DNA from: Lepidodermella squamata
Taxonomy: Eukaryota; Animalia; Gastrotricha
Length of the DNA: 64,000 nucleotides
NCBI GenBank assembly: GCA_047495785.1
Contig: JBLDXI010000015.1
Coordinates: 4,960,001 to 5,024,000, forward strand
Reading direction: 5' to 3'
The translations under genes and the position numbers were made by a program. Under the pieces are notes generated by a model that was given only the letters and a program-made list of their open reading frames with translations, was not told the DNA's origin and did not search any database. Within the stretch, counting starts at the first letter, position 1. Each line of letters begins with the position of its first letter. Shown here piece by piece: positions 8,211 through 46,063 of the stretch.

Positions 8211-8783
8211 ATGCCTTCCGACATAATGTCCAGCCAGCCTAGGGGTGGGAAAGGAGGCAAAGCACACCAAGCCTCCGTTTCGAAGTCAAGTCGGGCTGGA
8301 CTCCAGTTTCCAGTTGGTCGGATAAGTAAGTTTTCGTTCTGTTATTGTAAGTGATATGGGCCTAATATCTATCGGCTATAATAGTTTCGAGTTAACTTTG
8401 AGTACAATTTGTTCATTTTTATTACAGCGCGATTGATGAAAAAGGGCAACTACGCCGAGAGAATCGGCTCTGGCTCTGCGGTTTACATGGCAGCTGTCAT
8501 GGAATACTTGGCCGCTGAAGTTCTCGAGTTAGCGGGCAATGCAGCGCGCGATAACAAGAAGTCACGAATCGTCCCGCGTCACATCCAATTAGCTGTGCGC
8601 AACGACGAAGAGTTGAATAAACTGCTCGCTCAGGTGACCATTGCCGAGGGCGGCGTCCTCCCTAACATCCAAACCGTCTTACTTCCCAAGAAAACGACTA
8701 CCAAGCCACCGCCAACTGGCCAAAAAGAGAAGGGCAATAAAGCTTCTACGTCAAAAGAGAAAGCAGCGAGCCAAGCGATTTAA
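8211..8783 (+). CDS. H2A: Histone H2A variant with extended C-terminal tail ending SQAI (H2A.X-like); exons 8211-8325 and 8428-8783
   Basis: [15 protein letters not shown]|[14 protein letters not shown]...[19 protein letters not shown]...[15 protein letters not shown]. Intron is GTAAGT...TTACAG. AATAAA at 8860-8865. The start could be ATG 8211 or 8226. Confidence 0.95.
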
Positions 8784-22801: not shown

Positions 22802-25800
22802 CTACATGTCTGTGCTGTGCACGTGCCGCCGTGTCGCCGCCCGCTGCCCTCCCGCCGGCGCCCGTTGTTGCGGCATATGCGGCGCCGTCTCGACGGGCGG
22901 GTGTTCGCCGCGGCGCCACGACTGGTAGCCGAGGAACAGCGGCTTCTGGCTGCGGCTCATCATCAGCACCTGACTGCCCATCCACTTCATCGATACGTCT
23001 ATCGTCGACGGCGAGCCTACGTCAGGTCGCTGGCGGCTGCAAGTTGGCGACGACGACGACGAGCACGTGGCCGATGTCGATGTCGACGACGAAGCGGTTG
23101 ACGCGTCGTGGCGACGATGGCGGCGCCGCAACACGACAAAGGCAGCCGACAGACCGGCGCCAGCTACCACAAGCACGGCGCAAAGAATAGCCGGTAGTAG
23201 AACTTCAACTGTAAGAAAAAACCGCAATTATAGCCAAAAAAATCAAATTCTTAAATTTGCTTACATTGGTGAATCTTTCCAGCAATCATATCAGCGCCAG
23301 GCCGAGGCGCAGCCATGAGGGCTGGTGTTCCTGGCAAGGCAGTGCTGGTCGGGCATTCGTATGTCGGGTCGCTGATAGCTATACAAAAACGTACAATTTA
23401 GCAATTGAATCGAGAAAAAAATGAAAATAATGACTTACTGAGATTGTAGCCGAATGGGCGGCATTCAAAGCCGAGGTCAGGGAAGGCGCGGCGCTCTTCG
23501 GGCAACGCAACGCGGAAGCCGTCGCGGCACCGGCAAACTCCGCCAGCGCACTCCTGGTCGTACCAACCGAAGTAGCATTCGTCGGTGGCGGCGCAACGTT
23601 CGCCGAGCAGCGCGTAGCGTCGACCGGGTGCTGTAGCCGTTGGTTTGCAGCGCCGACCGTCACTAGCCGGTTCCCATTGCGACACGCAGCTGCACACGCC
23701 CTGCGCCGAGCAGTACGAACTGAACGCGCCGCACGTCACCGACTCGTCGCAACGCTGGTTGAGCTGCGACGTCGGCAGGCACTTGGTGCGCTTCTCGTTC
23801 GGCCAGAAGCCGTCGGCGCAAACGCAAGCCGGCGAGAAGCAGTTGCGCTGCAAGCAGTCTGAGTTGGCCGGGCACATGGTGTTTTCATTGCACGGGCTGT
23901 AGACCTTCTCCTGCTCGTTGTAGACGTAGGCCTCAAGCGCCGGCGATTTGAGCTTCGGACGCAGGCGTGCAAAGCTGGTCGGCTCTCCGACACGCACCGA
24001 CGAGTGGTAGGTTGGCTCTGAGATGGTGTCGACGAGCAGCGACTCCGCAACACGGTCTGATGAATCGCCGTAAGGAATGACGGCTGGACCAGCGGCGTCG
24101 TAATGCACACCGACCATGTCACCGACGAGGGCGAGGATCTGCGATTCAGAGTCAACGTGGTACTCGTTGATGCCAACTTGCGTCGTTACAAACGAGTTGA
24201 AGCCGACAAGCGCGTATTGGTTGTTACCGACGCGGCGCCAAATGTCGAAGTAGACGCGGTGGCCAACGGGTTGGCGGCTGTCAAATCGCCACCACTTGAC
24301 GAGACCAGAGCACAGAATCGGCTTAGACACGTAGATCTCGAGGTTGGCAGATGTCTTCGTGTACTGGACCTCGGGCAGCTTGAACCAGTTGCATTTGACG
24401 ATGGGCACGCAGCGTGGGATCGGCGACCAGAAACCGTCCGGCTGGCACGTGATCGTTGCTGTTGAGTCGGTGCGAACTGCGCCGAGCACGCCCGTGTCAG
24501 TCGGGCCGTCCATCGAGTAGCCAGGCTTGCATGTGTAGGTGTAGCGAGAGCCCTGAATGACATCTTGCCCGCTGATGTCGGCGAACGAGATGAGTGGCGG
24601 CGGTCCGCAATGAACATAGGTTGCCTGGACAACGGCTTGCAGACTGGGGATGCGCCATTTCTTGTACAACGGGCCTGTCATGTCGATGAGGCCGTTCTGG
24701 CCGAGGATTCGCGTGTGATCAATGTCCTTGGCATAACCGTCGAACAACTGCTCGCGGCTCCAAGGCGTTGGGTCGACCTCGGAAGCGTGCGGGATGACCA
24801 TGAACTCTTCGGGCAGTTTCGACGAGTCGTAGTGAATACCGACGACGTAGCCCTTCTTGACAACAATAGTCTCGTAGTCCTTGACGACGTATTCTTCAAG
24901 GCCGACACGTGTTGTAACGATTTTGTTGAAGCCGACGAGCTGGAACTCGTGCTCGTTGATGGGCTGCCACACGCCGAAGTAGACGGTCATTCCGAAGCGG
25001 CGGCTGTAGTAGCGCCACGCCGTAACCGCACCGTCGCAGTTGAATGTCATCGTGGTGAAAATCCACAGATAAGAACCGACTGAACGGAGAGCCAGTGGTG
25101 GCGGGTCGAATCCTGCCTTGCATTGCACTGTAACCGGGAAAATAAAAGCAATATTAACATCAGATTCTCACAAATCCTGCAATCGCAGCGATAAGGCACT
25201 CGCAAAACTGAAACATGCGCTTTTTGAGCAAAAACACGCTGAATAGGCGCGCATCAATCATTCGAGGCAGGAAAGTAATTTGAAGCTCAGTTGGCGGCAA
25301 ATAGTTTCAAACAAGAGAATCACGCAGAGAAAACACTCTATTTACCGTAAGTTGTGGTAGCTGAAAAATAAATTAATTCATTAGGACGATCGTGAATTTT
25401 TCGTGCCTAATTCTTGCCACTATATGGGTAATGGGGGACCAGATGGAAATCACTGACGAATGCAACCGCGCGCGTTTTTTTCATCAGAAGAAACTTTACC
25501 CTTTGGCTGGCAAATGGGCGCCGTCGTCCATTGGCGCGTGTCGCTTTGGCACACAGCAACTTCGGGGCCAAGTCGCGAGAAGTTGTCGTAGCACTGATAG
25601 TGCGCCGAATCGCCCGCGTCCGTCGTTCCCTGGTCGAGAACGTAGCGGCCGTAGACAACAGGCGGCGGCAGGCCACATCCAGACATGACTGCATTGCCAA
25701 ACAGATGCGAAAGAGAAGAAAGAAAAGCCAAACGTTAAGCACAGATGAAGACAGCCAAAAAGCGGGGGAAAAACTTACACATAGCATTAGCGACAAGGGC

Positions 25801-28800
25801 GGGTGTCCTGCGCTGCTTTTTCACCGGCCGTTTGAATGAGAAGTAGATGAAACGACGCAGTTCTTCAACAAGCGCCGTATGGTTGATGGCGCGGTCGTTG
25901 TAGTCGAAAAGCGGCGTGCCTGGCGAGTCGAATAAAACAGGCATGGACGACATGTTACCGAGCGCGGCTTGGTCCGGCTGTGGGATGGCGTCGAAGTACG
26001 GAATGACTCCGTCGTTGATCACGTCCTCGTAGTGAATACCAACAAAGTAGTCGGCATCCACCATGATGCGCTCGCTCTTCGGCACTTCGTACTTCTGCAG
26101 GCCAGCGCCTTGCACGAAAACGCGGTTGGAGCCGATCAGTTGGTACAGATCGGCGCCAACTTTGCGCCAAATATCGAAGTAGACAACGGTCGGTGTCGAG
26201 CTGGTAGAGTAGAAGTCCCACCGGTTGATGATACCCTTGCACGCGAAAGTCATCGTAGTGAAGGCATTCAACCACCGGCCCGACTGCTTGCCCGATCGGC
26301 TGAGCAGCGACGGCGAGTAGCCGGCCGCGCAATCCGGAGCGTCACCAGCTAGATGAGGGGAAATTCAAGCGAAAAAATTCAAGTCATGCCACTCAGAGCG
26401 ATAGAATTTTTTTTAAGCAAATATCAAGCAAAGAAGAGAAAGTAAGAAGCGTTTCACACAAAGCGGTTTAAAAGCTGTTCAATTAACGCGGATCGTCGGT
26501 TTGATTTAGCGGAATATTGCTCAGGTACCACAGGCCCCATGGGTTTTGAAATTTAGACTAAAAACATGACTTACCAGTGCAGGTTGGCAATTGAGACCAG
26601 AGCCCTGAATCTTGGCATACGACATTAGCATCGCCGATCATGCGGAAGCTGGGGCGGCACGTGTAGGTGATCACTTGGCCGATCGTCGAGCTCGCCACAT
26701 TTGTGTTGGGATCAGCGTCACGAATCTTCGGCGCCGGGCCGCAACTAGCCGTCGATTTAACGGTCAGTTGAACAGCCGGAATTCGACGTTTCACGTTTGA
26801 GCCGAGTGAGAACCAGCCCTGGGTTTGCAACGCTCGCTTTATCGTTGGGTCGTACTCAGGCTGGACATAGCAATCGTAGAGATCGGACGGCTGGAACGGG
26901 CCGGAATTGACCTCGTCCGCCCACGGTATGACAGCAGTAGAGCCAGGTTTCGAGTAATGAATACCGACAAAGTCGTCCGGTTGAACAGGTACGCGTTGAT
27001 CGGGAGCTAGTTCAAGCACAACACGACCCTTTTGCGTGGCGTTCCAACGATAAGCCGTGACCAACTCGTAGCGATTCGTCATGAGACGGCGCCAGATATC
27101 GATCATAACCTCGGATCCATCGTCGCGAACGCTCAGGAAAATGATTTTATCGACTTCACCCGTGCATGCGACTCGGAGTTGTGGGCAAGCGACCATTTCA
27201 TTAGTCGGCGGCACTGATAGAACAGCATCGGAGCGGGTTGGAACGGTCGGCCCGGCTCGGCAGCGTGAATCCGGAACAGCGACGCACTCCGGTTGGTAGG
27301 GCTGCGTGAATTGACCGGCGACGCAGGAAATCAACAACGGACCGGCGTATTCGAAGCCGGGGGCGCAGTTGTAGACGAAGCTGTTGGCGACAGGGCCCGG
27401 CTGCGGGATGGCGTTGGCTACCAGGGGTGGCAGGCCGCAGCTGAGAGCTGGCGGGGCGCCCGTTGGCAGGTTGTCCGGGGCGTTGCGGAGGCCGCCGAGG
27501 CATTGTGGCGCAGGTGACCACTGGCCGTTCGGGGCGCATTCAATGTAAGGCAGGCCAACAAGTTGGTAAGTCGCGTTGCAAGCAACTGGAAGCCTTGTAC
27601 CAACGGCTGATGACCCGCTGGTCACAACTTGGCCATTAGCAACTGTTGGCGCGATTCCACATCCCGATATCGCAGCACCTGAAAAAATTGGTAAAATTGT
27701 GTTAGATACCAGTTTGAACTTGCACCCTTTTGTATCATATAACGAGCAGTTAGTTAATTATATATTAATTGTTTAATTAGATTCCAAGGCATTTTATAGC
27801 AAGACGCCGCAAGCTTGTACACATGCTCGATAATTACTTTGCGCGCCGCCGACGTTGAGTCGGAACGAGTAGAGCCGTTTCACTGGGCTGAAATTTTCGA
27901 TGCGAACGTTGCCGAAAATTCGCAACAACTCCTGAACATCGTTGCGCTCAAGCGGCGCAGTTCGGCAGTCTTGCAAATCGACAGGCTGGAATCCGTTCAG
28001 CTTCTGCTCGTTGGCGTACGGCACAGCACCGTGCCAGTCGAGGTCTTCGTAGTAGATGCCGAGGAAATCGCCAGTTTGCACAGCGAAGCGCTCGTTGGCC
28101 GGCAGTTCGTACGTCTGCTGGCCAATTTGCGTCGCGTTGATGCGGCTCGTGCCGACCAGGCTGATGGTGCCGTTGCCGTTGTCACGCCACACGCTCAAGT
28201 AGAACGCGGACGCTTCGTCAACAAGGCTCTGGTACTCCCATGACAGCGCCTGGCCTGGGCACGTTACAACCTGGGACGGGCAAACGTTCATCCAACTCGC
28301 CGGCGCAGCAAGTTCTTCCGGCTTCAGGATCAACTTTGACGGGCCGATTTGCGCCGAGCACGGTTTGGTATCCGGTATTTTCGCTGGGATGATGAATTCA
28401 CGCAAAAATTAATTCGAGGATTATTTTAAAAAATGCGCGCGCCCAAAGCTGAGAATTATTAAGGTGGATGCTCACCTACGCAAATGGGTGGCGTCGACCA
28501 GACCAAGCCTGGTAGACAAATCACCCGTGCGGCGCCGAAAAGCGTCGAATTTCCATTACACGTGTACTGAACAAACTCGCCAATTGCCGTCGAAGTTGGT
28601 TGAGCGATCAGCGAGCCTCCAGTAACCTTAGGAGGAGCCGGACACATTGGCGCAGCTGCGCAAATGAAGGCATATTATTATTTATCGATTTCAATCCAAC
28701 TCGCGAATACCCCAAAAGCGTTAATATTACACCAAAGCTTATTTTGCGTGAAAAAATAGAAACCTGCGCAAGATGGCGGCGCGCTCCATTTGCCGTCGGG

Positions 28801-31800
28801 TCCACACGTAATGGTGGCGTTGCCAACCAATGTGTAGCCCGAGCGGCACGCGACCGTTACCTCGGTAGCTGACGGACTGCCAACGATGGCCGCATTAATT
28901 ACAGTGGGCATTGGGCCACACTGAATTTCAACAACTTCACAGTTCAAACACACAGGTTAGGATTGTATTAAGGAGGAGAGTTGGGGGTTTTGTGTTACCT
29001 TGGACGTAAGCCCGCAGGAAAGGCACACGACGCAGCTGCGCGTCGCCAATAAGCACCCGGCCGTATCGTGACATTGCATCGACAATATCGGCGCGGAACT
29101 TGGGCGTCGCAGCGCACGTGTAGAAGTCGCCTGTTTGGAAGCCGTACGTGTTCTTCTGGTCAGCGAACGGAACCACGCCGTGGCGATCAGGCCGTTCGTA
29201 AAAGATGCCCACAAAATCACCGGCTTGAACGCGGAAACGGTCGAAGGTAGGCACGGAGTAAATCTAATTAAACAAAATTATCAGCTTTTCTCGTAATAAG
29301 TTGGCATGTGAATCATTACTATTCGGCCTTGGCTCGACGAGTTGTACGCGTTGTAACCGATCAATCGGTAATTAATGTCATTTTCGGAATCTCGCCGCCA
29401 TACAGCAAAGTAGACGGTAGTCGGGAAATCGGAGGCCGAGTAGAACTCCCAGCTAGCGACTTCACCATCGCAGTCGAATGCCATGTCTGGGCAGGCGTTC
29501 ATATACGTTCCAGGGTGTTCGATGGTTGTCACAGTCTTCCAATCACGCCCAGCTACGCACTGGTTCGAACCAGCTGTGGAAATCAACGACAAACAAACAA
29601 GTCAACACAAGCTCTCATTTCGAAATCGAAAGAATGTAACCCAAAAGCACAGAGTGTTGTTAGTGAAATTTGTTAAGAGTCCCAAAGTAAGAAAGAAAGT
29701 GAAAAGCAACACGTGTTTTGTTCGGGGTGCTATTAACCTGGTTGGCAATAAGGCAACGGCGACCAGTCGCCCGTCGCCAGGCAAATGACTGTGCCGGAGC
29801 CGGTGAGGTTGTAGCCGGTCTGGCACTGGAACTCGACCGTGTCACGCACGGCCGATAGACGCGTCGGGAACGATTTAACAGGCATGGCGTTCATCACCAA
29901 CGGGATCGGACCACAGGTCGCGATCGCCGTGGTCGTCCTAGTCACGAGTGGCGACTGTGTGGTGGTGATATTGGGCCCAACTAAACATGCACACACAATC
30001 ATCAGTAAGACGCATCACAATTACGATCTATTCGAGAAACCAAATCAAGTCTCAAAAATGAAGCTTACCGCAGTAGGGTGCAGTTGTCCAGTTGTTATCG
30101 GTTCCACACATAATCGACGGCTGTCCAACCATTTTAGCCGGAGGTGTGCAGGTGTAAGTCGCCGTAGATCCAACTGAAGTGGCTGCTCCAGTGAATGTTG
30201 CGCCAACTACAATAGGAATTGGCCCGCAGCCTTGTGACGCTGATAGAAAAATCAGGAAAATAATCAATACACGTTCAATGAACAACCCGAATTGAGTTAA
30301 TGTTAAACACCAAAAGCTTAGATATTAAACCCAAAGCGCGCGCGTCGAACACCCTGCACTTACGGACTACTTCGGCTTGCAAGCCGTAGAGACGCGTCAC
30401 AGATGGACCGGGGACGTTGACCTGGCCACGCATCGCGACTTGCTTCAGAATGTCACTCCGATAGATTTCAGTATCGACACAGTTATACAAGTCACTCTGC
30501 GAGTACTGACCGCGCTGGTTTGAGCTCACAAATGGTATAACACCGTACAAATCAGCTTGTTCGTAGAAAATGCCGACAAAGTCACCCTTCCGTACGGTTA
30601 TACGGTCGGGTTTGGCGATCTGTATAAGCTCCTGACCGATGCGAGTTGCATTCGCCAAATTGTACCCAACGAGGACGAAATCATTCGGGGTAGCATCGGC
30701 TTTTTCCGAGCGGCGCCAAACGCTCAGATAGACCGAGGTGCCGTCGTCCAAGATGCTGTAGAAGTTCCAACTGGCGATTTGGCCGTCGCATGGGATAGTC
30801 AAACCCGGGCAAACATTCAGCCAAGTTCCTGGCAAACCAGGCGCGCGGGTGAACGCGTAAGACGGTACAATTTGCCCGACGATGCAAGATTTCGAATCTT
30901 ATTAAGAAATTAATCCAAGTTATTAAATCCGAGAAATGGTAATTAAGCTAAACCCGAAGCGAAATAATGCAAGATAAAAACCTCTGCAAAACGGCGGGTC
31001 ACTCCACGTCAGGTTATCCTGGCAATAAATCTGTGACTTTCCAACCAGTGTGTACTCGGGACTGCATGCGTAGGTGACAATAGCACCAACTTTACGACTA
31101 GTGCCCGTTTGGGTGGCATACGGGACAAACGGGGCGTCCTGGCACACCTTAATGCCTGTATGAACAATTTATATTTCAGTTTGATTCAATGTTAACTCGA
31201 GTTATTAATGAGCGCAAGTAATCCCAAGCTTGATTTCTATTAGTATCAGGACGCCAAACGAACCAGAAACGAAAGCCTGGACTGATGGGATGCGGCGAGG
31301 GTACTCGGTTTCGACCGTAAAGTAACCCTGGGTCGACTGCTGTCCCATAATAGCTGGCGAGTACTTCTTGCTAGTTATGCACTGTACAAGGTCGCGTTCT
31401 TGGAAATTGAGCAGTTTGCTGGAGTCGACAAATGGAATGACAGGCGAATCATTGGCGCGGTCGTAGAAAATGGCGACAAAATCGCCCTTTTTAACCACGA
31501 TTCGACTCTGCGGCTCGACGTAGTAGGTTACCTTGCCGCGTACATTCGCGATGTACTTGTTGGTGCCGACTAGTACGAACCGCTCGGCATTAGGAGCCGT
31601 TCGTCGAACTACAGCCAACGTTACTTGGGTGCCGTCGGCTGCGTCAGAGTACAAGTCCCATCTCTCTATTTCGCCGTCACAGGTGAAGACAAGTCCCGGG
31701 CATACATGCAGGTCTGTGTTCGCGTCATTCGCCTTCACATTAGGCACAGGCAAGCCACCAGTGCAAAGGGCAGAGGGCGCAGCTGAATGGGTGTTCAAGT

Positions 31801-34800
31801 TACACAGTCGCAAATTAATTACTCGTAAGTGATAAATTTAGTTATTAAAATAATATTATAACCCCAAAACACTCTGAATGCGTTGATCGAAAATTAAACC
31901 GGAGGGAAGCTCTTTTCATGCAATCAAACCTTCAACTCGCGATCTTTCTGGGGCCTTTCGCGGCTTCGGCTGGGTTGTGCCATTAAGCGGCTTAGCCGTG
32001 GAAAGACTTTCCACGCACGTGACCACCCCAACCCAAACACCGCGGCGACACTCCAGTTTATTTTCGGAGACCGGGTCGAAGCCGGACAGGCAGTAGTAGA
32101 TAACAACACTGCCATCACGTGGCGCTCCGACATAATGAGGCACAGCTACACTTCCTTTGAACGTAGGCAACGGCTCGATGCAAAGTGGATCTGAAATAAA
32201 ATTGGCAAAAATCAGAATTGGGCAAGGAAACGGCATTATATCAGGGGTGAGTGATGGGCATGCTTGTTAACTATAGGGTAGAGCCATATTATTATACAAC
32301 CGCTACACCCGTGATGACTGAAAAAGCGGAGCCTACTGTTTCTGAATAAGCACGGGCTGTAAGCGAAGATGTCTTTGCGTCTGAATAGGGCATTCTGCCA
32401 ATAGGGCAGGGCCTGCGAAGCATCGCACCCCGTTCCAGGCGGTTCATCGTAGTCTTAATAAAGCATTATTTATCAGCAATTATTTGCGGTTTTCAATATT
32501 TGGCGAGTAATTTTGTCGTAATAAAGCTTGATACGTACCATCGTTGTTGAGGCGAATGTTGTTGGCGGGATTGTTTGAACGTGGCCAGGAATTAACAGGG
32601 AAATTCTTGCCACCCAGACACACAGGCAGCTGAGACCATAGGCCGCTAGCTAGGCATTGGATCACAAGTTCGCCAACCGGTTCCAGGCCCTCGTCACACA
32701 CGTACTCGGCCGTGTCTCCAGGACGGGAGACGTTGCCATCGACAGCGAACGGCAGTAGTGTCGCGTTGGCAACATACGGCGGGGATCCACAAGTAATTGT
32801 AGGCGCTCGAGGTACGCAATCAGGTGCCGGGGTCCAATGCCCGGTCGTCGTGCAATGAATATTCGAAGGCCCTTTAATTTCGTAACCCTCCATGCAAATA
32901 ACGTCGGCCCGGTCACCTTCAACCGCGGTCATTCCACTGAAATACGGCCAAACACTTCCGTGGGCAATTGCAGGCAACTCTCCGCATTGAACTGAAACAA
33001 TTGATAGACCAGTATTATTAAAAAATTATGCTGTAGATTGAAAACTCACTTTTGCAAACGGGTAGTGGTTGAGACCAAGAGCCTTTATCGGTGCAAAGGA
33101 TTGTCGCATCTCCGTTGAGCGAGAAACCCGGGGAGCAGGTTACGGTTGCTTTGTTTCCAACATGGCTGTGGTTTCCCTCGTACTGCGGCACCGCCATTCC
33201 ATTGGCAATGAACGGCATCGGGTCACAGGAACGCCGCGCTGGCTGAGGGACGCAATGCGGAGCAGTAGACCAACGCCCTGTGCCGAGGCATGTTGTAACA
33301 GCGGGGCCCACCAGGATGAAACCTGGTTGGCAAACGAAGTAGATCGAATCGCCGACAAGAGACAGCGCACGTCCGTAGAAAGATGTCGTTTGAACTGAAT
33401 TCTTAACTTCCGGACCTTCGCCACACGAGACCTGGCATGATGGCGCCTCAGACCAGGTATTGGAGTCCGAGCAAGTCACGCGGGGATTGCCGATCAGAGC
33501 ATAACCACTTAGACATTCGAAAACAACGGAATCACCTGGGTGGCTCACTGATTCGAAAAACATGGGTCGAACTACAGAATTAGCTACGACAGGGACTTCA
33601 CCACAGCCGCCACTTGATGTTCGAGAGGTGGTTTTCAAGCAGTTAGGTGTCGGCGTCCACAGTCCATTCGGCTGGCAAAGAGAAACGGCTGGTCCGTGAA
33701 GAACAAAGCCATCATTGCAGGTGTAAGTAACAGCGTCGCCTTCAATGCTCGACCGGTTCGTGTACGGAGTCGCAACTTGCGAGTTGGGTATATTGACAGG
33801 ATTACCACATGAAGTTTTACAAGTCGGCAGGAACGGGTACCAGGCACCTGAAGGGGTGCAGTGAACAATGTCTGAACCTAGCAGGGTGTAGCCACGGATG
33901 CATCTGTAGCGAACGCTGTCGTTGACTCGACTGTTATTGGCGATGAAAGTAGTCAAAATCTCGCTGTTGACGACCATAGGTGGGCCGCCGCAACCACGGT
34001 TAATGTTTTCACAAGTCGGAAGGTCCGTCCATTGGCCGGGGGTGACGCAGAAAACAAGAGACGGGCCGCGTATCTCATGCCCGGCGTTGCAAACTACCAG
34101 CAATGAGTCACCTTCAACGGCTTTCGGCGTCGCGTACATGAGATCAAGCCGAGCGTTTCCGATGGTTGGAGGTTTAGGGCAAACTGCTTTACAAGTCGGT
34201 GGGTTGGACCATTCGCCATTCTCGAGGCAAACGACCTGAGCCGAGCCCGCCATCACGAAGCCGGAATTGCACGTGTAATCCGCCGAAGTTCCGATAGGGT
34301 GGGTAAACTTGTTGAAGGAAAGAAGGTCGACCCCGGGCGCCGGTTCATTGTGCACGCGGACGATGCTGTTCGGTACCTGAGGCGGTAAGCCACAGCGAAC
34401 TTGCACTTTGCAGACCGAGCCTGGCTGAGACCACGTTCCGTCATCTTGGCAAACAACTTTCAGCGACGTGTTATCAACTGCTGATTCGTAGCCTTCGACG
34501 CAATCGTACGTGACGACTAGCCCTCGCGGTGGGTGAATCGGAATGGTGTTCAACGGCGAGATGGCAGCTTTCGGCAACATTGGAGGCGGGGGACAAACGA
34601 CTAAAAATAAGAAAAATAAATTAGGGCCAAGTCGATAGAAATCCCAGTAAAAAATTGCGTAAAACAAAGCGAAATATCACACATGAGAAGAAATATGGCA
34701 TAACATGTTCTGTTATTTCGTCCAAAAGCAGAGATAGAATAGATGGCTCAGATAATATTTTGTTACCGAAGCAGCAAGCGATATCGTTTCTTTTCGCGGG

Positions 34801-37800
34801 ATATTTTACCTTTCAATTTCTCAGCTGATTTTCACTGCAGTCGACCGGAACGCGGCTACCCGTCGGTGAGCTAAAACCTAGGTTAAGAAGCTTCCCAAAC
34901 CCGATTTCTTTTCTCTTCAACGCATTACAACAGTGTTTGACCGATTTTTTCAGGTAAATTATAAAATAATTAAATAAGAAATAAGCACCTTTGATGTGAG
35001 CTTTCCAGCTGTAAACACGTTTAACAGGTACACCAGTAACAACCACGCCACCTTGTCGAGCCATTTGGTTGTTGATATCTTGCCTGAAGGCACGTTGAGA
35101 CACGCATGACCGCAGTTCATTGGCCGAATAGCCACCCAGCGTCTGGCTGTCTCGGCTGTCAGCGAAGGGTACAACGCCAGGGCTGTTCTCGTTCTCGTAA
35201 AACAGACCGATAATGTCACCACGGCGGACGAGGATGCGCTCTCCGACCGGTACGACAGACAGTAAGGGTCCGGTTTTGGTCGCGTTGACAGCGTTGTAGC
35301 CGATCAGTTTGTACAGCGAACCCTCCTGACGCCATACAGACAGGTAAACGGGTGTCATGTCATTGCGAAGGCTCAACACCTCCCAGCGCTCGATTTCACC
35401 GTCACAAGGCACGACCTCGTCCGGGCAGATGTTCAACCAGTTGCCAGGGTCTGGCAAAACGTTGGGATTGCTTGCGTATAGCGTCGGCCCAACACTGCAA
35501 CCAGGCGATTCTGAAATAATTTTTCAATAATAATTACGCTGATTCAACTTGAAATGCGACAAACCATCGCAAACAGGCGCGTCTGACCAGAGATTTCCGG
35601 GTAAACACGTGATAGCAGAAATTCCCTGAAGTGTGTAGCCATTGCTGCACGAGTACATGGCCGTGTCGCCAATGAGGCTGTCACGGCCGCTGTAAGACGT
35701 GCGGACAGACGAGTTCGGCACGCTGGGGGGTGGTCCACAGGTTCCACGAGCTGAAATAATGATAGAAACAACGCATTAGTACATGTTAGATATTTCAATG
35801 AACCCGCGAAATAATAACCAAAAGCAATATAATACGACACCGAAATTTCCCAACAAGCTCTTCGGCGACTCAAAAGCCTCGACTCGGGTCAAACCTTCGC
35901 AACGTGGTGCCGGCGACCACTGTCCGTTGGCATTGCAGACGATGGTGTCAGGTCCACGAATCGAGAATCCGGGCAAACAGCGGAATCGAACGACAGAACC
36001 GATTTCCGAACTTTCACCGAACTGAGACGAGTTCGACACGGTCGGAATAGGGCCGCAAGTCGGAACGGCCTGGATGTAGGCCTTCCACTCATAGACGCGG
36101 CGGACGTTTGGATCGATAAGTGTGACGTAGTTTTTGTTTCGCATCTGTGACGACACTTCGTAGCCAAACATGCGAATTGAGATGCAGTCGACAACGTCTG
36201 ACGCGGCGAATGTCCGTCGGTTATCCATGGTGCCGTACGGCACGACACCCCGCGAAAATTCTGAGTCGTAGTACAAGCCGAGGAAATCGCCAGGCTGTAC
36301 GTAGATTCGCTTATCCGCCGGCACGTCGTAGACAATGCGTCCGATGTTAGTCGCGTTGACGACGTTCGAACCGACCAGATAGAAATTGTTCTGGCCAATG
36401 CGCCGCCAAACGCCGAGATACACCGAGCCAGAGTCGATATTGGAGTAAAACTCCCACCGGCTCAATTGGCCCGAGCACTGGAAACTAACGGACGGGCAAA
36501 TGTTGAGCCAGTTGCCTGGGTCGACCAGCTGCTGGGTGGGCGGGTTTGACCCCGTTAAAACCCCAGCGCCAGCTGTGCAAGCGGTCGATGCCAGGCAAGT
36601 CGGTGGTTCGGACCACGTTCCGCTGTTAAGGCAGGTTACCGATAGATTACCCGAGGGCGTCCCTCCTCCGATACAGGTATAAGAAACCATGTCTCCTGGT
36701 CGCGAGTCACGACCCGACCACGACAAAGCAGTAACCTGTCCATTCGCGACAGCAGGCGCTTGTCCACAAGTCGATGAAGCTGTGAATTTTCAATTCAAAA
36801 CGGAAAATGTTTAAAATCAGCCCGATAAACAACAACGTGAATCCCGCGCGCGTTTTCTACACCAAAAGCTGGGTCTACCATTCTACCTGAGCAAGTTGGG
36901 AAGTCGCTCCAGACACCCTGTTGGGTGCACGTGATAGTCGTCGGGCCGCTGAGCTGGTAACCGGGCGAACAGCGAACATTGATGACAGCGCCCAGCTTAT
37001 TACTGGCGCCACTGACCGCGCCGCCTCTGATGTCCGGAATCGGGCCGCAGTCAGTTGGACTACCCGGGGCAATGAAGCCTTGAACGCTGGGTATACGACT
37101 GACGAAATTTGTTGTAGCTGTCAAGTAGCCGACGGTGTTCATCGCCCTTTGCACGTCAACTTGGTTGAGCGGGAAATTGAGGCACTGGTACAACTGGCCC
37201 TGGGTGAATGGGCCGAGGTTGTCGGGTGCCGCGAAAGGGATGACACCAGTTCGGAACTTGTGGTCGTAGTAGATTCCCACAAAGTCGCCCGCATTAACGT
37301 AGATTTGTTCGTTTTCGGGTACAACGAATCTGATGAGGCCGAGACGCGTCGCGTTGTAGACGTTATAACCGACCAGTTGGTACTTGGACGGCGACGTTGT
37401 GCGCCAAACTGACAGGTAAACAGAGGTACCGTCGTCACGTACGCTTTGAAACTCCCAGCGCGTAACTTTTCCCGAGCAAGTGAAGTTCATTTGTGGGCAA
37501 AGATGGGCCCACGTCAGGGGTACGTGCAGCGTTTTAGCTGGCACGGCGTACCCAGTCGAGCACGATTTCGGCTGTCCCTCTTCCAACAGGCCTGAATTGT
37601 TTTTTTGTCAAATATCGGTTAAAATGTGATTGGTCAACAAAGAGCGATTCGACTGACGACGACCCCAAGCAAACAAATAATATGGTGGAGAGCTAAAATG
37701 TCGAAACTTACCGACGCAAACAGGTAGGTTGAACCAGAGTCCTGATTGAAGACACGTGACTGTCTCACTGCCTTGCATCGAGTAAGACGGGTTGCAGGCG

Positions 37801-40800
37801 TATCGAACAGTTGATCCGATCGAATTACCGCTCGATGCCGCGATGTAGCCGTTCGGAAGAGGCGGAGGCGGGCCGCAAGTTGTTGGCGTGTTTCCTGCAA
37901 CAGAGCAAAGGATTTGTTAGATTATTGCTCAATTATGAAACCAGTGAAACCCGAGATGGCTTCTAATAAGCCGTTATAATAGGTAAACCCAAATGCAAAA
38001 TGGTGAAATTTTCTACCTCCTTCACGCGGATTTGTTGAACCTTATAAAGTAAAAATGTTCGGATAGAATTGGGTACTTGAATTTGGGATGGAAAAATGAG
38101 GCGGCTCATTCTTCTCGTTATACTAACCGACGCATTGCGGCACGGGTGACCACTGGCCAGAACTCATGCATGTAATGATATCACTGCCTCGCATTTGGAA
38201 AGTCGGGTTGCACGTGTACTTGACATTGGAGCCGGGAGCATTGCTGCTGCCGGGTGTAGCCACGTAGCCATTTGGAATCGTTGGCGGCTGGCCACACGTC
38301 ACAGTGTTTGCTATAAAAATCATCGCAATCCCGATTAGAATTCATCGAAACAAAACTAAGGCTCAATTCTTCCCATAGCAACCTTAGATTTGCGTGATAT
38401 TAAATTATTTTGTAAGTGTTATTAACCCAAAAGCAAAAGTTTTAAGAAGTAGCGGGATCCCGAGGCACTGAGTGTTAATTACGCTGGCAAGTTGGGGCTG
38501 GCGACCAGGTGAGATTTGACTGGCAGGTGATGTATTCGGAGCCGACGAGCCGGTAGCCGTCGTTGCAGCGGTACATGACGCGAGAGCCGACTTCGGTGAG
38601 CTCGCCGAATGAGGCGGCGTTGTTGACGAACCACGGCGCCCCGCAGTTACCAGGCTTGCTGGGCACGCAAGCCGGAACCGCAGACCACGTCGAGTCAGAA
38701 CGGCACGTGACACTTTCCGACGAGGTCAACTGGTAATTGGGGAAGCACTCGTAGACAACAAGTTGCGTTGTCTGCAGCTTGATGCGGCCGTTAGCAATGG
38801 CTGGCGCTGGTGGGCAGGGCATGACAATGGCGACGCATTTAGGCGGAGCCGTCCACTGCGCACTCGATTGGCAAGTGATCGACCCCTGGCCATCGAGGCG
38901 GAACCCGCGCTGGCACGTGTAGCCAACCACAGTTCCAATGGCGCTGTTCGTTGAATTGGCATCAGCGTTTGTTACGACTGGCGGTGCGCCGCAATTTCTT
39001 GTCGGAGGCGGCGTGGTACCGACGGGTAGGCAAGACGGGAAAGGCTGTTGCCACAAGCCGCTAGAGCACGAAATCGCCGCCGGACCATAGAGGTAAAAGT
39101 CTGAGGTTAAGCAGGCGTAGGTCGCTCGTTGGACGGTGTTCGAAAAAGTGGCGATGTAGCCATTATTAATGTTAGGTGGGGCGCCGCATGAGCCAGCCTG
39201 TTGGCAAGTCGGCATTGTTTCCCACTGAGTCCCGTTTTGACACCGTATCACCGGCTTGCCGACCAAAACGTAGCCGGTGAAACACTGGTACAATGTTTGA
39301 GTAGTGTTAGTCATGACAATCATTCCGTTGGGAATATCTGAAGGAGCGCCGCAGTTGCGACGAACGCAAGACGGCGCCGTAGTCCAAGATCCATCGGCTT
39401 GACACGTTATGGTTTCGGAACCGACTAGCATCCAACCAGGGGCGCAGCTGTAGGTTGCAGTCGAGCCGACGCTTGACGAGTCGCCACGGCTCACCGAGTT
39501 GGCGACGAATGGGACAGCCGGGCAGGCGACAGAAACGCATCGTGGGGATGATGTCCACGTCCGAGTCGCCGGGTTGCATTGCACAGACTCGGGACCGGCA
39601 GCGAATGAGAAGCCTTGGTTGCATTTGTAAACGACAGCCGAATTATTCTGGCTGGCAATCGCTGCGTTCGGTACGGTCGGAGCAGTACCGCATGGCGATC
39701 CACTGGGGACACAGCGAGGCACGTCAGACCATGACCCGGTGTTCTGGCAAGTCACCGCAGCACTACCAACCAGGGTGTATCCGGCGGCGCAGGAGTACTG
39801 GAAAAGCGAGCCAACGCCTGTGTCGGAGCTAATCGGACGACCAGCTCCGTTGGTGAGTTGAGGCGGCTGGCCGCAATCGCGAACGCACGACGGCAGTTGA
39901 GACCAAGTTCCATTCGTCTGACAAACGATGTAACCCATACCACGCATGAGATAGCCAGTCTGGCATGTATAGCTGACTACAGAACTGGCAGTTCGAGCTG
40001 TCGAATTAGCGTTGCCGTTAGGTACCGTTGGAACCGCTGGGCATGTGGTGGCACCGACGCAACGTGGCGGCGTCGACCAGGTTCCAGTGGTTTGGCACGT
40101 GACTCGGTCATTACCGACCATCGAATAGCCGGCTTGGCATGTGTAAGTTAGCATCGAGCCAACAGTGGTGGCTGATCCACCGGCTGGGTTCGTCCACATC
40201 GAGTTCGGTACGGCTGGCGGGGTTCCGCAGTCACGTTCGCAGCGAGGAGCGTTGGACCAAGTGCCGTTCGAAAGGCAGACTATCGTCGACGGGCCGACTA
40301 CAGCGTATCCAGTTAGACACTGGTAGCTGATGTAGGTGCCAAGGGTAGTTTGGGACGAATTTGCAGTAGCAGCTGGGACTTGTGGCACTGATGGGCAGGA
40401 AACAGCCGGAGCTGCCGGGGTGCAAAACGGGAGTTGGGACCACTGGCCATTCTGCTGGCAAACCGACTGGCGTGGGCCTTGTAGTACATAACCTGATAGA
40501 CAAGTGAAAGCCACGGACGCGCCAATGTTATTCGCTGTCCCGATAGCAGCACCATTCGTGATGGATGGTATCGTGCCGCAGGTTGATCGCTGTTGGACGA
40601 CGCACGACGGAATCGGAGACCAGCGGCCATCGGATTGGCAAACCACGGTGTCATTACCGACTAGGGTGTAACCTACATCGCATTGGTACTTCAGCACAGC
40701 GCCGACGAGGTTCGAAGATCCAATGACGATCGCAGACGAAACAATCGGGATGGTCGAGCAAGATACGACAGACGTCGTTGCTATTATCAGGAAATCAACT

Positions 40801-43800
40801 CAAGTTAATTCAGTGTTAAGAGCGGCATAGCCACTTTACGCGATATCAAATCCGTTGCGTTTACTCGCTGTATAAACCCGAAGCGTGAAGCGTCAATTTG
40901 GGAGCGTAGAAACAAAATAGCATGTTCAATTAATAAAAAGCGGGTGGGACATACCTGTGCAGGTTGGCGGGGTGCTCCAAGAACCGTTCGGTTGGCACGT
41001 GATTTTGTTATTGCCATTTAGCTTGAAGCCGTTCGAGCACGCGTAGTAGACTGAAGATCCGAGCACGGTGGCTGAGAATTGCGGCTGGGCGTTCGATACC
41101 GTCGGCGGCAGGCCGCAGTCGACCTGGCACGTCGGCGGCGTCGACCACATGTTGCTTGTCTGTTGGCACACGACCTGCGCGTTTCCGATCAGCGTGAAGC
41201 CGACGCGGCACGAGTAGAACGCAGTTGCGCCAGGCTGTGTGTTGTCGAACTGCACATCGCCGTTAGCGACCGGTGGCGGGCGACCGCAGCCCGGGGCCGC
41301 GGACGAGGCGGTGCACGATGGCGGCGACGTCCAAGTGCCGGAGCGCTGGCAGACGACGGTTGAGGCGCCTTGAAGTTGGTAGCCGACGCGGCACGAGTAG
41401 AGCGCCGTTGATCCGACTTTGCTAGCATCGAACTGAACATCGCCATTTGTGATCGCCGGCGGTCGTCCGCAGTCGACCGTCGAGCCGGTAGTTGTCGAAG
41501 CTGAAGAGGCAAGCGGTGAACACAAAACGAATTAAAGCGGGTAAGGTTAGGAACAGTTAGGCAAAACACAACATGACAAAACATATAAGAAGCGATAGGA
41601 AGCATAATGTAATAAAGCGGCAAGTAAACATAAGCGGACCTTGGTGACAGATGGGCGGCACGGACCAGCGGCCGTCCGGCTGGCAGCGGATGACAGGATC
41701 CCCAAGCATTTCATAGCCCGGTTGGCAGCGCCACGTGATGATGGCGCCCACCGAAGTGCGATCGCCAAAGTGATCAGCGTTCGGCACTTCGGGTATCGTA
41801 GAGCACATGACGGTGGCTGAAGCCCGATAAGTAACATAACATTATTAGTAAGTGCATAAATCCCAAAAGCAACAAATAATAAAATTGCACCGAAATATTA
41901 GCAAAAATGACTCACCGACGCAGGCTGGCGGAGTTGACCAGGTGCCGTCTGATTGGCAAACCGTTGTAGCCGGGCCTTGCAGGGCGTAACCAGCCTGGCA
42001 CGTGTAGGTAACACGGGCGCCAAAGCTCTGGTTTTCCCCATTCGAATTCGAGTTCGGAACAGTTGGAGGCTGGCCGCAACCGAGTGGAACTGAAGTTCAA
42101 ACAATTCATTAGCACTCACTCGTCCAGCTTAATCATTTAATCCGACACTTACCACAGGTAGTTCCTTGTTGTCGAGATTTCCCTGGATCGCAGACGCAGA
42201 CCGGGTTGACAGATGCCTTGGTGCACATCAGCAAAGCGTCGCATTCGAAGTTCTTCGAGCAAGCGTCGCCGAATGTCTTGCGACGAATCGTCGAACAGCC
42301 CCATTTACGAGCCGATCGGCGATTCGCCTCGCGCCGCACGCCAGTGATTTGCGTAAAGATCCAGCACTGTCCGTTGTACGGGTTGAAGTACGAAATACCG
42401 CGGCACTCCTTCGAGTACTTGCAGTACTTCTCGCAATCACCAAGATTCTGCACCTCTGGGTCATTTATGATGACCGAGTCGCCGATGAGGGCGACGTCGT
42501 AGCGAAGTTCAAAGTCAGAAATCAACGGCGTGCGGCAAGTGTCCTTGCAGAACTTTAGGAAGGCCTGATAGCCGGGCGCCAAACGCACCTCGGAGCTGAC
42601 GTAGGAATAGACCTTGCAAGACCCGCGGCTGTAAGAAACGGCCATGCAGGAGGATTGCTGACGGCAGAAGTTCCAGCAGTCACTAGCCATTGGCATGGTG
42701 ATCTCACTAAAAATGCCCTTGAAAGTAGCGTCCTCGATCTTCTCCTCAGCACAATCTAGATGGTTTCAATCAAACAAAACTCGCAAGTTAACAGCTGATC
42801 TCACTTGGAATTCAGGACAAATAACTAAAAAGTGAGTATAGTTTCTATGTTTAAAGGCGTAAAGCATGCAAAGCGAAATAAGCTCAAGTAAGAATAAAAG
42901 CGAGTGGGTGGCCGAATACCTTGCCGAATGACAGCCCGTGCGAGGGGCAGGTTGGCGTTTCGCTGGCGTAGACTCGGGTGCGCTGAGATAATTCGTTCGG
43001 CCTCGATCGTCTCGTGGAAGATGGGACCGGCAACAATGTCGGAAAGTTCGGTGTCGGAGAACGGCCCGACACCGGACTCGAAGAACGGGATGACGCCCTT
43101 GTTGGCGCGGCGGCTGTAGTGCACGCCGATGACGTCGCCTGAGCGCACCGGGATCTGATTCTCCTCGGGCACCTTATAGATGTTTGCGCCGCGCTTTTTC
43201 GGCTTCACGACGTTGTAGTCGACAAGTTCGTACTGGTTGAGCCCGCGTGGGCGCCACACAGCGAGAAAAGCAGCGGGCACGGAGCCGTTGCCAGCTACCG
43301 GTGCCGTGTTGAAATACTCCCACTCCTCAATGAAGCCGTTGCATTTAAGCGGTTCCGACGAAAATATTGTCAGATGTGCACTTGGCGGTTTAAGGCCATC
43401 TACAGGCGCTAGGGGCTTGCCCCAGTTACACGTGCTCGCTATATTTTAAAGCAATAGGTAAAATGTTAAGTCAAGCGTCAAGGAAAGCATTCTGTCGTCT
43501 TTTAAACGGTTAAAATTGCGTGCGCTCGGAAAAATTGTTACTTTCAAGCGTGCATTTTTTCAAACATGCGAAAGCAGTCACTTTTTACACATAATAACAT
43601 ATCAACAGATAAAGCCGAACGAACCTGATTCCATGGCGCGCAGACACCGAGGCGGCTGTGACCAGCTGCCAGAAACTTGGCACAACACCTCGGGAGCGCC
43701 TTGCATTTCGTAGCCGGTGTTGCACGAGTATATCACCCGGGCACCGATCGTTCGCTCGTAGTTCAGCGGGGCTAACGTTGCGCTGTCAACACGAGGCGCA

Positions 43801-46063
43801 TCGCCGCAGTTGACACCTAGAACGAATGTTACATCGGTTAATAATCAACAATAAAAAATCAGAGATCGAAAGTCAAGTGAGAAAAACAGCTATTAAAAGC
43901 ACATCAATAATCCCACAACTCTACATGTTGTCTAAATCTGTTGAATGAAATATTTGTCTAATCTACATTTTTGTAACAAACACACACGGAAAACGTTAAA
44001 ATAGGTTTAGGTGAAAGCGAAAATATTGTATAAAGCAATGTAAGGGTTTAGGGATAGGTGCAGAATAGTTAGACTGGGTTAAGTTCCGGGCAGACCTGTT
44101 GCATCTGACTGAACGGCTTGCTTTGGCACATGAGCCCGAGGCTTTGCCAGCCTCATCGGCTTGGCATGCTCAACACTCGGGCGCATTTGCTGCAGAAAAT
44201 CTGTTACACCAATTGATTTAAAGTTAACACGGTTAAATGATACTAGAAATAATGACTGGCAATAATTTGTTGACGCTCAATGATTAAAAAATAGGTATTT
44301 TGATTATATCGAACCTGGGCAGGTGTAGAACAAAATCTGGAACTGATCCATGGCAATATCACTGTACGAGGCACCTCCGACAATGCCTTCGAATGAGATC
44401 ATGAATTTCTAAAAGTGAAAAATTCGATTCGATATTATCCGAGAGGTAGGCTGAAATAACTTACGTTGATGTCGTTCGGAAGGTCTGAGAGCGCAAGATC
44501 GGGCACAGAGGCTTGAAGCCACCGATCCTGTTGCGAACCCGACTTCTCCCATAGAAGCTTTTTCGCCTCGCCGTAATTGAGATAGACATTCAACGTTCCG
44601 ATGGTGTTGCCGTACATGTGATAGTAAAAATGAACATTGAAGCAAATGGCGCGGCCTCGCATTGTTGCGGTTTCGAAGGCAGGGCTCGTCAGAACGGCGC
44701 GGTCGAGCAGATTGCGGCGAGTCGACTCAATGTATACGAAGGCGCCGTTGCCATTGATGTCGCCATCAGGGCCAGTGCCAGTTGTCGGCGTCGCTCCCGT
44801 CTGCCACGACCAGTCGAAGATGTCGGCATCTTTCATCTGCGAGAACCCGCACAGAGACTCATCGAATGAGCAGGAAAAATTGCCAACAACCGACGCCGGG
44901 CCTTCGACGTCTGGGCAAGTGCCAGCTAAGACGAAAATGTCATCGATTGCAATGTGGGAGTTTGTTCCGCCACGAATGCCGTCGTATAAAATTTGGAAAG
45001 AGCCGGATATCTCCAGGGTACGTTGATAAAAGTGCCACATGTTACCCAGCGATTCGCCGCCAAGCGTGGTCAAAGTTGCAATTTGCCCTGAAGTCTTTTG
45101 CTTAACACGCAACGATCCGATCGCAGTGCCGAACATGTGGTAGTAGAACTGAAGGCAGCAACGCGAAGTCGGGCACGAGATGTCACCCGAAGACATCGAA
45201 GTAACAGAGCCGTCCATGCCTTGGGCTGAGTTAGTATACATAAAATAGCCATCTTTACTTTTCAAGGTGTGGTCGATCGATGGTCCAGTTTGGGAGGTGG
45301 GCGGGAATCCTTGAGCTCGGGCCCATGAGAAACCGAACTGCTGATCAGGTTGAATCGCAAAGCCACAAGTGTCCTTCTCGAAATCGCAGCGAAACACTAC
45401 GTTGCCAAGAGCCATAACAGCGATCAACGCTGGAATTTGGTTGTTTGTTTCGGACGTAGGCGCCGCTAACGAGCCGCCAGCCGCTGCTAATGAAGCTTCC
45501 AAGTCACCATGAGCCAAATCAATACGCGCTACATCCGAATAATCGACGGTAGTGAACGGGCCTGGTTCGGCCTTGCTGAAGTAGGGTATGACTCCGACGG
45601 CGCCGTTTAGGCTGTCGTAGTGGTAGCCGATGCAGTCGCCTCGGCGCACTGCGATGGGACCACCAGACGCGTCACCGAGCGGCACGTAATTGTGGCCGAA
45701 CTTGTTGGCGAAGACACGAGTCGACGCCAAGCGCCGATACCGGTTGACACCGGTCGGCCGCCATACGTCCAGGTACATTACCGTATTATCACTAGTAGTA
45801 CTGTAAAACTCCCATTGTTGCACTGCTCCGTCGCAGTCGAACGTTAAATTCGGGTATATAAACAGGCCTCGCAGCGGCCTGACTTGAGGGTTGCTTTCAA
45901 TCCGCCGTCCGGCGATGCAAACACTTTCACCTGGAAAAAAACTCGAAACTAGAGGTGGATTCGATTTTCAATTGAATTACGTACCTGAAACGAGAATAGA
46001 TTGCCTGAATTGCGCCAAAAACGCGCACAAGGCAACAAAGCCGAGAGATATCCTCGTTAACAT
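22802..46063 (-). CDS. Giant (~6,100 aa, hand-summed) type I membrane protein: signal peptide, 13 copies of an unassigned ~160-aa domain, ~46 Sushi/CCP, 2 MAM, 2 PAN/Apple, EB/EGF-like modules, TM helix and short cytoplasmic tail; ~37 exons
   Basis: Signal exon 46063-45985 (MLTRISLGFVALCAFLAQF...). I traced a chain of GT-AG, frame-preserving exons down to the TM exon 23208-22802 (VLLPAILCAVLVVAGAGLSAAFVVL-RRRHRR). The Sushi pattern C-xx-P...Y/F-x-C-xx-G(Y/F)...C...W-S-xx-P-x-C recurs throughout. One candidate linker exon (~32453-32337) is uncertain. Confidence 0.85.
23439..23900 (-). other. About three membrane-proximal EB/EGF-like Cys-rich modules
   Basis: PCNENTMCPANSDC...CVCADGF, LNQRCDESVTC...CSCVSQW and LGERCAATDEC...CAGGVCRCRDGF. 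Confidence 0.65.
32600..34600 (-). repeat. Second tandem array of 10 Sushi/CCP modules
   Basis: Eight units in exon 34600-33050 and two in exon 32991-32539. Confidence 0.9.
38483..42089 (-). repeat. Tandem array of 18 Sushi/CCP modules, 13 of them in one 2.3-kb exon
   Basis: Counted from repeated four-Cys/Trp Sushi units in exons 42089-41916, 41816-41640, 41500-40955 and 40780-38483. Confidence 0.9.
42153..42755 (-). other. Two PAN/Apple-like modules plus one EB-like Cys module within the giant receptor
   Basis: DCWNFC...CMAVSY...CKVY and DCEKYC...CRGISY...CWIF fit the PAN pattern C-xxx-C...C-x-x-x-S-Y...C-x-L/I. They are followed by FGDACSKNFEC...C...CVCDPG. Confidence 0.75.
44315..45400 (-). 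other. Two tandem MAM domains within the giant receptor
   Basis: CDFEKDTCGF...W...TGPSIDHT...GYFMY...CLQFYYHMFG..IGSL...IAIDDI, then CSFDESLCGF...FDW...TGP.GD...FVYIES...FYYHMYG..IGTLNV...W...DIAMD. Confidence 0.9.

Follow-up and report, generated by a model that had tools for sequence, protein, structure and literature searches.

The stretch of DNA analysed here, referred to as the window, is a 64,000-nucleotide (nt) segment of the gastrotrich Lepidodermella squamata (assembly GCA_047495785.1, contig JBLDXI010000015.1, positions 4,960,001 to 5,024,000). Its minus strand, 46063..22802, reads as one gene, which in a model rebuilt from the sequence runs from an ATG at 46063 to a stop codon at 22802-22804. 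The model consists of 36 exons (E1 to E36) and 35 GT-AG introns of 54-388 nt (median 114 nt); the coding sequence of 18,312 nt translates, without an internal stop, into 6,103 amino acids (aa). The reading phase is unbroken across 35 of 35 junctions, with one signal peptide and one membrane span at opposite ends, and the product reads as a single type-I membrane protein, as an initial annotation made from the same sequence had supposed in calling it one giant receptor. The predicted ectodomain is made up mainly of Sushi (CCP) modules and of copies of a domain of about 170 aa, denoted here as X.

The exon chain was curated by hand: stop-free blocks in the three frames, the intervening sequences and frame-compatible GT..AG candidates were combined into 35 exons. 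The 36th, a 105-nt exon (44200-44096), was spotted by eye and added after comparison with an orthologue carried on the metagenome contigs L004 and L005; its sole basis is peptide-level conservation in that orthologue. A dynamic-programming gene finder, run automatically on self-trained splice matrices, was discarded because it broke real exons up into 73 pieces. An alternative donor of E18 directly after the Sushi module (GTGGCA) was set aside and the stronger GTACGT at 32538 kept; both are phase 1. A tblastx search for hidden conserved exons, covering all introns of at least 90 nt, found none. The main elements of the gene, with the basis of each assignment, are as follows; HMM denotes a profile hidden Markov model.

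22802..46063, minus strand: whole coding span (built model; collinear with the orthologue on L004/L005 over aa 30-5938)
45985..46063, minus strand: exon 1, start codon and putative signal peptide (MLTRISLGFVALCAFLAQF...), then a phase-1 intron (sequence reading)
45413..45928, minus strand: X copy 1 (HMM of the gene's own copies, E 8e-30; alignment A1)
44912..45388, minus strand: MAM 1 (Pfam PF00629, E 4.4e-54, two stretches)
44315..44890, minus strand: MAM 2, split by the phase-0 intron 44464-44409 (Pfam and gene model)
44096..44200, minus strand: probable extra linker exon, 105 nt, phase 1-1 (open frame flanked by AG/GT; peptide DFL...RL.KPRAH..KQA kept in the orthologous L004 intron)
43625..43816, minus strand: Sushi 1, single-module exon (gene model and own-copy HMM)
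42920..43438, minus strand: X copy 2, single-module exon (own-copy HMM, E 2e-67)
42153..42755, minus strand: two PAN/apple domains and a Cys-rich EB-like module (Pfam PAN_1 2.8e-07, PAN_3 1e-06; EB below cut-off)
37712..42089, minus strand: uninterrupted run of 20 Sushi modules, exons E7-E12 (gene model and own-copy HMM)
37712..38310, minus strand: E11 and E12, two 183-nt Sushi exons (orthologue alignment)
23962..37591, minus strand: alternating region, X copies 3-13 interleaved with 25 Sushi modules (own-copy HMMs)
31264..31782, minus strand: E20, the exon of X copy 6, without orthologue counterpart
29264..29319, minus strand: phase-0 intron in X copy 8, not in the orthologue
23439..23961, minus strand: three EB-like, Cys-rich modules ahead of the membrane span (two stretches matched by Pfam EB, E 1.8e-10)
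22802..23208, minus strand: last exon, encoding the only membrane span (AILCAVLVVAGAGLSAAFVVL), then a basic stop-transfer stretch and a tail of ~110 aa that ends T-D-M, closed by the stop (sequence and model)
28656..41915, minus strand: introns of the central region in which the sense strand has GCTT(T)(T)GG (13 of 34 scanned introns)

Exon 1 appears to encode a signal peptide, judging from its charged start and the hydrophobic core that follows. Next come X1, two MAM domains, the linker exon, a Sushi module, X2, a PAN-PAN-EB-like block and 20 Sushi modules; X3-X13 interleaved with 25 Sushi modules lead on to three EB-like modules, a juxtamembrane exon, one membrane span and the tail of ~110 aa. 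Pfam matches cover both MAM domains (E 4e-54), PAN_1/PAN_3, Sushi (PF00084, down to E 1e-22) and EB, and no CUB domain was matched by Pfam in any exon block. HMMs seeded from the single-module exons recover 46 Sushi modules (one of them degenerate), which fit a tandem pattern of ~60 aa with four Cys and a conserved Trp, and 13 X copies. The layout drawn up beforehand (signal, X, MAM2, Sushi, X, PAN2, Sushi array, X/Sushi, EB, TM) is thus matched by Pfam and the own-copy HMMs, and the gene adds an unannotated architecture to the giant adhesion receptors rich in CCP modules.

The conserved parts of the tail, as seen in L005, are a membrane-proximal block, IDVSMKWMG.QVLMMSR.QKPLFLGYQ, and the end T-[DE]-M, while the remaining tail has diverged. 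The last three residues are T-D-M in the window gene and T-E-M in L005. The class I PDZ-ligand pattern is S/T-x-hydrophobic at the C-terminus; from this resemblance the tail may be anchored to a scaffold through its PDZ-ligand-like end.

The introns follow the modules closely. Phase 1 accounts for 33 of the 35, at module borders, and the two phase-0 introns lie within domains, at 44464-44409 (in MAM2) and 29319-29264 (in X copy 8). This is the pattern given in the initial annotation, including both phase-0 positions, with 35 introns instead of the ~36 counted there. Its further statement that exons encode whole modules, most of them skippable in frame, holds in part: 30 of the 34 internal exons have 1-1 symmetry and could be skipped in frame, and 19 exons contain exactly one module, but several hold many. 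E10 encodes 13 Sushi modules, E17 eight, and E33 X-Sushi-X followed by three EB modules; more than half of all modules sit in multi-module exons, and exon size (94-2,298 nt) and content are mixed. As a separate observation, 19 of the 35 introns have a length divisible by three (~12 expected), and all 19 would give in-frame stops if retained.

A profile search with the X alignment led to the metagenome contigs L004 (ERZ23486787 scaffold_1568) and L005 (ERZ27333047). Together they carry an unannotated orthologue, collinear with aa 30-5938 of the window gene at 54-94% identity per exon. The alignment blocks stop at the exon ends of the model, giving independent support for it, and at the DNA level 58% of exon bases but only 8% of intron bases are similar to the orthologue contigs. 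The most conserved exon is the PAN exon, 42153..42755, at 93.5% identity; the central Sushi runs show 45-58% identity, compared with 83-94% at the PAN, X and EB exons.

About 27 of the intron positions in the window have a counterpart in L004/L005. Five window introns are not in the orthologue, the flanking exons being contiguous there: both phase-0 introns (L004 3685 to 3692 for the MAM2 intron; 17386 to 17387 for that of X copy 8) and the phase-1 introns after E6, E17 and E31. One intron, between X10 and the next Sushi module, is specific to the orthologue, in which the long Sushi run also has one Sushi more than in the window gene. Two whole window exons are without counterpart, the Sushi exon E11 and the X exon E20. 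E11 and E12 match the same L004 site, at 54% and 80% respectively, and the orthologue has a counterpart of E12 only; from the alignment the two look like a tandem duplicate pair. E20 finds paralogous matches only in the orthologue (at most 37%), and the gap in L004 between the counterparts of E19 and E21 is 231 nt.

On L001/L003, another scaffold of the same sample, lies a more distant paralogue, at 30-40% identity and with far fewer introns, in which the modules follow one another from end to end as in the window gene (MAM, Sushi, PAN, Sushi run, X/Sushi, EB). The picture suggested by these alignments is of a family that evolves through gain and loss of whole modules, with the module-bounding introns eroding over time. 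The architecture had been described as unrecognised; no named protein with the same architecture turned up, but the orthologue and the paralogue do share it, on unannotated metagenome contigs only.

Three features of the metagenome contigs are recorded here. At ~8213 of L004 a TGA stands where the window has TGC, at the third conserved Cys of a Sushi module; one contig covers the site, and a nonsense allele, an assembly error and decay of the copy are all conceivable. Intron 13 of the orthologue (L004 10781-10849, 69 nt) is in frame and stop-free, and was read through by the metagenome gene caller (protein P0001). Two copies of the counterpart of E34, the juxtamembrane exon, lie at L005 11674-11781 and 12555-12662, on either side of the membrane-span exon; they are 67% identical and may have arisen by local duplication or may mark where a neighbouring family member begins.

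Most of the locus is covered by only one public run, which is of genomic DNA, and the contigs of that run pass through the introns without joints. A second run, taken by guess to be RNA and from a different organism, contained 6% of the words of E33 and was not used. Over 28300-34290 (5,991 bases) the genomic run and the window disagree at 162 places (~2.7%), and pairs of its contigs fall into classes of likeness of at least 99% (12 pairs), 95-99% (10) and 90-95% (5), which suggests two haplotypes or a sister strain. Variants were analysed for the 40 best-supported of the 162 differences, which span 28300-30900. Among these, 33 are exonic and 7 intronic, and all 33 exonic differences are synonymous third-position changes, with no non-synonymous change. 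Over this span, therefore, the window copy is under strong purifying selection. Since all 33 listed exonic differences are synonymous, the reading frame in E22-E29 is confirmed.

These data bear on the idea that the gene is a polymorphic self/non-self or immune receptor with its diversity carried in alleles, like the sponge aggregation factors (AFs), Hydractinia Alr or Botryllus FuHC. The giant modular ectodomain, the existence of a paralogue family, the fast-evolving central Sushi runs and a second DNA data set differing by ~2.7% would all fit such a receptor. The wholly synonymous exonic differences are, however, the opposite of what diversifying selection would leave, at least for 28300-30900, and we regard an allele-diversity receptor as very unlikely.

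The same observations address the integrity of the gene model, which might join two or more adjacent family genes or describe a partly decayed gene. The TGA in place of a conserved Cys codon in the orthologue contig could be taken in this sense, and so could the result that no public run recorded as RNA covers the locus. An artefact is difficult to reconcile, however, with a phase that stays unbroken over 35 junctions between a single signal peptide and a single membrane span at the two ends. Single open reading frames of the orthologue cross five of the window junctions, and window exons in turn span the orthologue-specific intron; the same end-to-end order recurs in the orthologue and the paralogue; and the variation in the window copy indicates purifying selection. 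An artefact of this kind is the least probable of the explanations considered here, and a highly improbable one.

The X domain is the main new content of the gene. Twelve contiguous copies were aligned (alignment A1); the thirteenth is split by an intron. The copies are 23-41% identical to the first, with invariant Cys4, Cys35, G37, G80, Y104 and P114 and near-invariant positions that include W42, W59-R60 and G101. X matched no Pfam family, even at E 10, consistent with its having been described as novel, and a search against PDB sequences returned chance matches only (E 0.3-0.4). AlphaFold2, run on the 12-copy alignment, predicts an all-beta fold with a mean local confidence (pLDDT) of 92.8 and a template-modelling confidence (pTM) of 0.89.

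A Foldseek search of the X model against the PDB gave nothing at E<=1e-3. Exhaustive structural alignment gave best Z scores of 8-10 over ~140-150 residues, to phage capsid and tail decoration domains, the lectin-like domain of Clostridioides Cwp84 and the N-terminal domains of the carbohydrate esterase PbeAcXE and of a polyvinyl alcohol esterase; matches at Z 5-6 were to carbohydrate-binding modules (CBMs) of the CBM6/32/35/36 families, F-type lectins (fucolectins) and PHR domains. The model superposes over most of its length on these lectin-like and CBM-like jelly rolls (Cwp84 PF18560, CBMs, F-type lectin, phage decoration domains), but at an identity of 5-10% and with no HMM match to these families even at E 10. 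X is therefore modelled as a lectin-like or CBM-like jelly roll; this is a statement of predicted fold, not of ligand, and a shared fold alone does not establish sugar binding.

The domain is widespread. In the ESM Atlas its neighbours, whether compared by features or by shape, belong to unnamed sponge and annelid clusters. The poriferan neighbours raised the possibility that X is the sponge Wreath domain; this was ruled out, as Wreath is restricted to demosponges, lies C-terminally and is encoded over three exons (PMC5400394). At E<=1e-3 the X profile retrieves 1,376 representative proteins, of which 242 pass the stricter limit of E<=1e-10. They belong to sponges, annelids, nemerteans, molluscs, echinoderms and hemichordates, and also to some bacteria, among them Candidatus Entotheonella and a deltaproteobacterium. 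X is present in polycystin-1-like proteins of the hemichordates Ptychodera and Glandiceps, where it is N-terminal to WSC/PKD/REJ, in an F5/8C-SUEL-VWD protein of the sea star Patiria, in a perlecan-like protein of the snail Bulinus, in proteins of Owenia, Lineus and Amphiura, in astacin-ApeC-CUB-Kringle-lectin proteins and in SRCR/LamG proteins; its partner domains include REJ/PKD, VWD, LDLa, astacin/ApeC, SRCR and collagen. Judged by these profile matches, X is a mobile module that recurs in unrelated architectures. In named proteins such as XP_070579640.1 of Ptychodera flava and LOC119721398 of Patiria miniata the same domain of ~170 aa is recognised by profile at E 1e-14 to 1e-32, but the architectures are wholly different from that of the window gene (REJ/PKD channel, F5/8C-SUEL-VWD, LDLa-laminin-Ig) and none alternates X with Sushi.

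X was neither annotated nor named in any of the carriers. The profile matches with the highest scores, all from unnamed metagenome contigs, contain Sushi modules as well as X, and for this reason the X/Sushi alternation looks like the mark of a lineage-specific multigene family. A confidently predicted fold that is widespread in animals is thus at present without a Pfam family or a name; defining it would annotate part of polycystin-1-like and perlecan-like proteins and of many "uncharacterized" proteins across the invertebrate phyla.

Taking these observations together, we consider it probable, at roughly 0.6, that the gene encodes a mostly constitutively spliced adhesion or recognition receptor, the exon structure of which is a record of its assembly. 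In this reading a small invertebrate would have, as one of a lineage-specific multigene family, a single gene that codes for a giant type-I membrane receptor. In the ectodomain, CCP/Sushi modules would act as spacers between 13 jelly-roll X domains of lectin or carbohydrate-binding-like type, with MAM and PAN domains placed N-terminally, and a short cytoplasmic tail would present the PDZ-ligand-like end. The ligands, to go by the modelled fold, may be glycans or glycoproteins on other cells or on the matrix. The near-uniform phase-1 introns bounding the domains would be what shuffling of exons and tandem duplication of modules (class 1-1) have left behind, and their presence alone would not point to a mechanism for isoform production; the diversity that is visible is evolutionary, species differing by the gain or loss of entire modules and introns.

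Class 1-1 phase has been described as the norm for shuffled extracellular, mainly-beta modules (PMC8001218), and in the sponge AF genes 154 of 155 introns are phase 1, which was read by the authors as exon shuffling (PMC5400394). The phase bias in the window gene is far beyond chance for introns generally, yet as expected for this class of protein. Because class 1-1 symmetry is the rule for shuffled extracellular modules, phase symmetry carries no weight for isoform diversity, as the initial annotation had itself cautioned in noting that phase alone proves nothing. The exon-phase pattern is textbook exon shuffling and is not to be counted as evidence of isoform diversity.

Several observations weigh against constitutive splicing of a single receptor gene, or are left outside it. 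No public run recorded as RNA covers the locus, and the single gene and its constitutive splicing are accordingly readings of DNA; a glycan ligand of X is suggested by its predicted fold. The remaining points concern the splice sites and a shared intron motif, both of which had been pointed out before and are seen in the rebuilt model. At 12 of the 35 donors in this gene the +3 position is a pyrimidine (GTT.., GTC..), and two of the acceptors read AAG. These donors are located as follows.

44314, 44095, 43624, 41639, 38127, 35894, 35564, 31929, 31263, 30981, 29737 and 28763, minus strand: donors with a pyrimidine at +3

When 17 introns were compared by eye between the two species, weak donors were found at six in the window and at five in the orthologue, and all five of the latter are shared (GTT donors at introns 8, 14, 21, 24 and 27); by our own hypergeometric estimate the probability of such sharing by chance is about 0.001. 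Coding constraint does not account for the conserved weak donors, the +3 position being outside the coding sequence. The motif GCTT(T)(T)GG occurs on the sense strand in 13 of the 34 introns scanned. For the form GCTTTTGG, eight of the nine copies in the 64-kb window (both strands counted) lie on the sense strand in introns of this gene, and in L004 all five copies are likewise sense-strand and intronic (L004 6211-18890). The motif is present in both species at introns 7, 9, 10, 12, 14, 21, 22, 24 and 28, which otherwise do not align. Motif and weak donors together suggest some special splicing constraint on the central exons that exon shuffling and constitutive splicing do not cover.

Such a constraint would be compatible with regulated skipping of 1-1 cassette exons, perhaps by way of the intron motif and the weak splice sites, through which many ectodomain lengths and compositions would be made. 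The 30 symmetric internal exons, 19 exons being single-module, would supply the substrate; weak donors that recur at matching introns of the two species (five of the 17 introns compared) and a motif, GCTTTTGG, that is sense-strand, intron-only and gene-specific in both species would supply the means; and the equal-sized duplicate exons E11 and E12 could be counted in its favour. The same exon symmetry occurs, however, in constitutively spliced modular genes. Inter-module introns have been lost in both lineages, with the modules, more than half of them, fused into large multi-module exons, which argues against selection for separate skippability. Nor does the presence of the motif track the weak donors, which occur in 5 of 13 motif introns compared with 7 of 22 others (35-intron model, own count). 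A crude duplex scan of 16 motif sites against the pre-mRNA revealed no common complementary docking site, the best partners being GC-rich exon windows, and a search of Rfam over 22000-47000 found no known RNA family. Regulated cassette skipping is accordingly judged doubtful, the isoform-diversity reading being the less likely one on present evidence.

In a narrower version of this proposal, the central exons, ~E7-E29, form the cassette system, and the intronic GCUU(U)(U)GG together with weak 5' splice sites lets a dedicated factor tune the inclusion of modules. If true, graded ectodomain lengths and lectin-module counts would be obtained from one gene; we think it rather unlikely. The motif and the weak sites are compatible both with enhancers that secure constitutive inclusion and with regulated skipping. 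The conserved intron motif and the conserved weak donors are nevertheless the only features that could make the locus a model for regulated splicing.

In the flank of the gene, at 8385-8780 on the plus strand, lies a histone H2A-like open frame with a long Lys-/Ser-rich C-terminal extension.

A close parallel in overall design is with CSMD1-3. These are likewise giant single-pass proteins in which a beta-sandwich module of ~110-170 aa alternates with Sushi, with a long pure Sushi run and a short tail, and CSMD exons follow the domain borders in phase 1. The single membrane span with a short tail after the ectodomain, a CSMD trait, is present in the window gene. The suggestion that the layout echoes CSMD with CUB replaced by a novel domain is a fair analogy: X alternates with Sushi and no CUB was found. 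However, the repeated CUB-Sushi units of CSMD are absent, X, with a different jelly-roll fold, standing in the place of CUB; the pure Sushi run comes after the alternating part in CSMD and before it here; and the window gene adds MAM, PAN and EB modules. It is not a member of the CSMD family.

With Dscam-type genes the window gene shares many in-frame, module-sized exons in a surface receptor, but clusters of similar, equal-sized alternative exons are not seen, the sole pair being E11/E12 (183 nt each), and the crude duplex scan, which gave GC-rich exon windows, produced no common partner of the kind found in docking/selector pairing. The excess of non-synonymous polymorphism that marks polymorphic allorecognition receptors is likewise absent from the listed differences in 28300-30900 (33 synonymous, none non-synonymous).

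The sponge AFs, studied in Amphimedon (AqAF; PMC5400394), are alike in being large modular extracellular proteins, encoded in a gene cluster, with a phase-1 bias and a newly defined domain. Their domains differ (Calx-beta, VWA/VWD, Wreath), and the AFs are highly polymorphic, whereas the listed coding variation of the window gene is synonymous only. The window gene also agrees with the class 1-1 exon-shuffled proteins described by Patthy: the border introns are in phase 1, as 33 of the 35 are here, and the two phase-0 introns are intradomain and lineage-specific.

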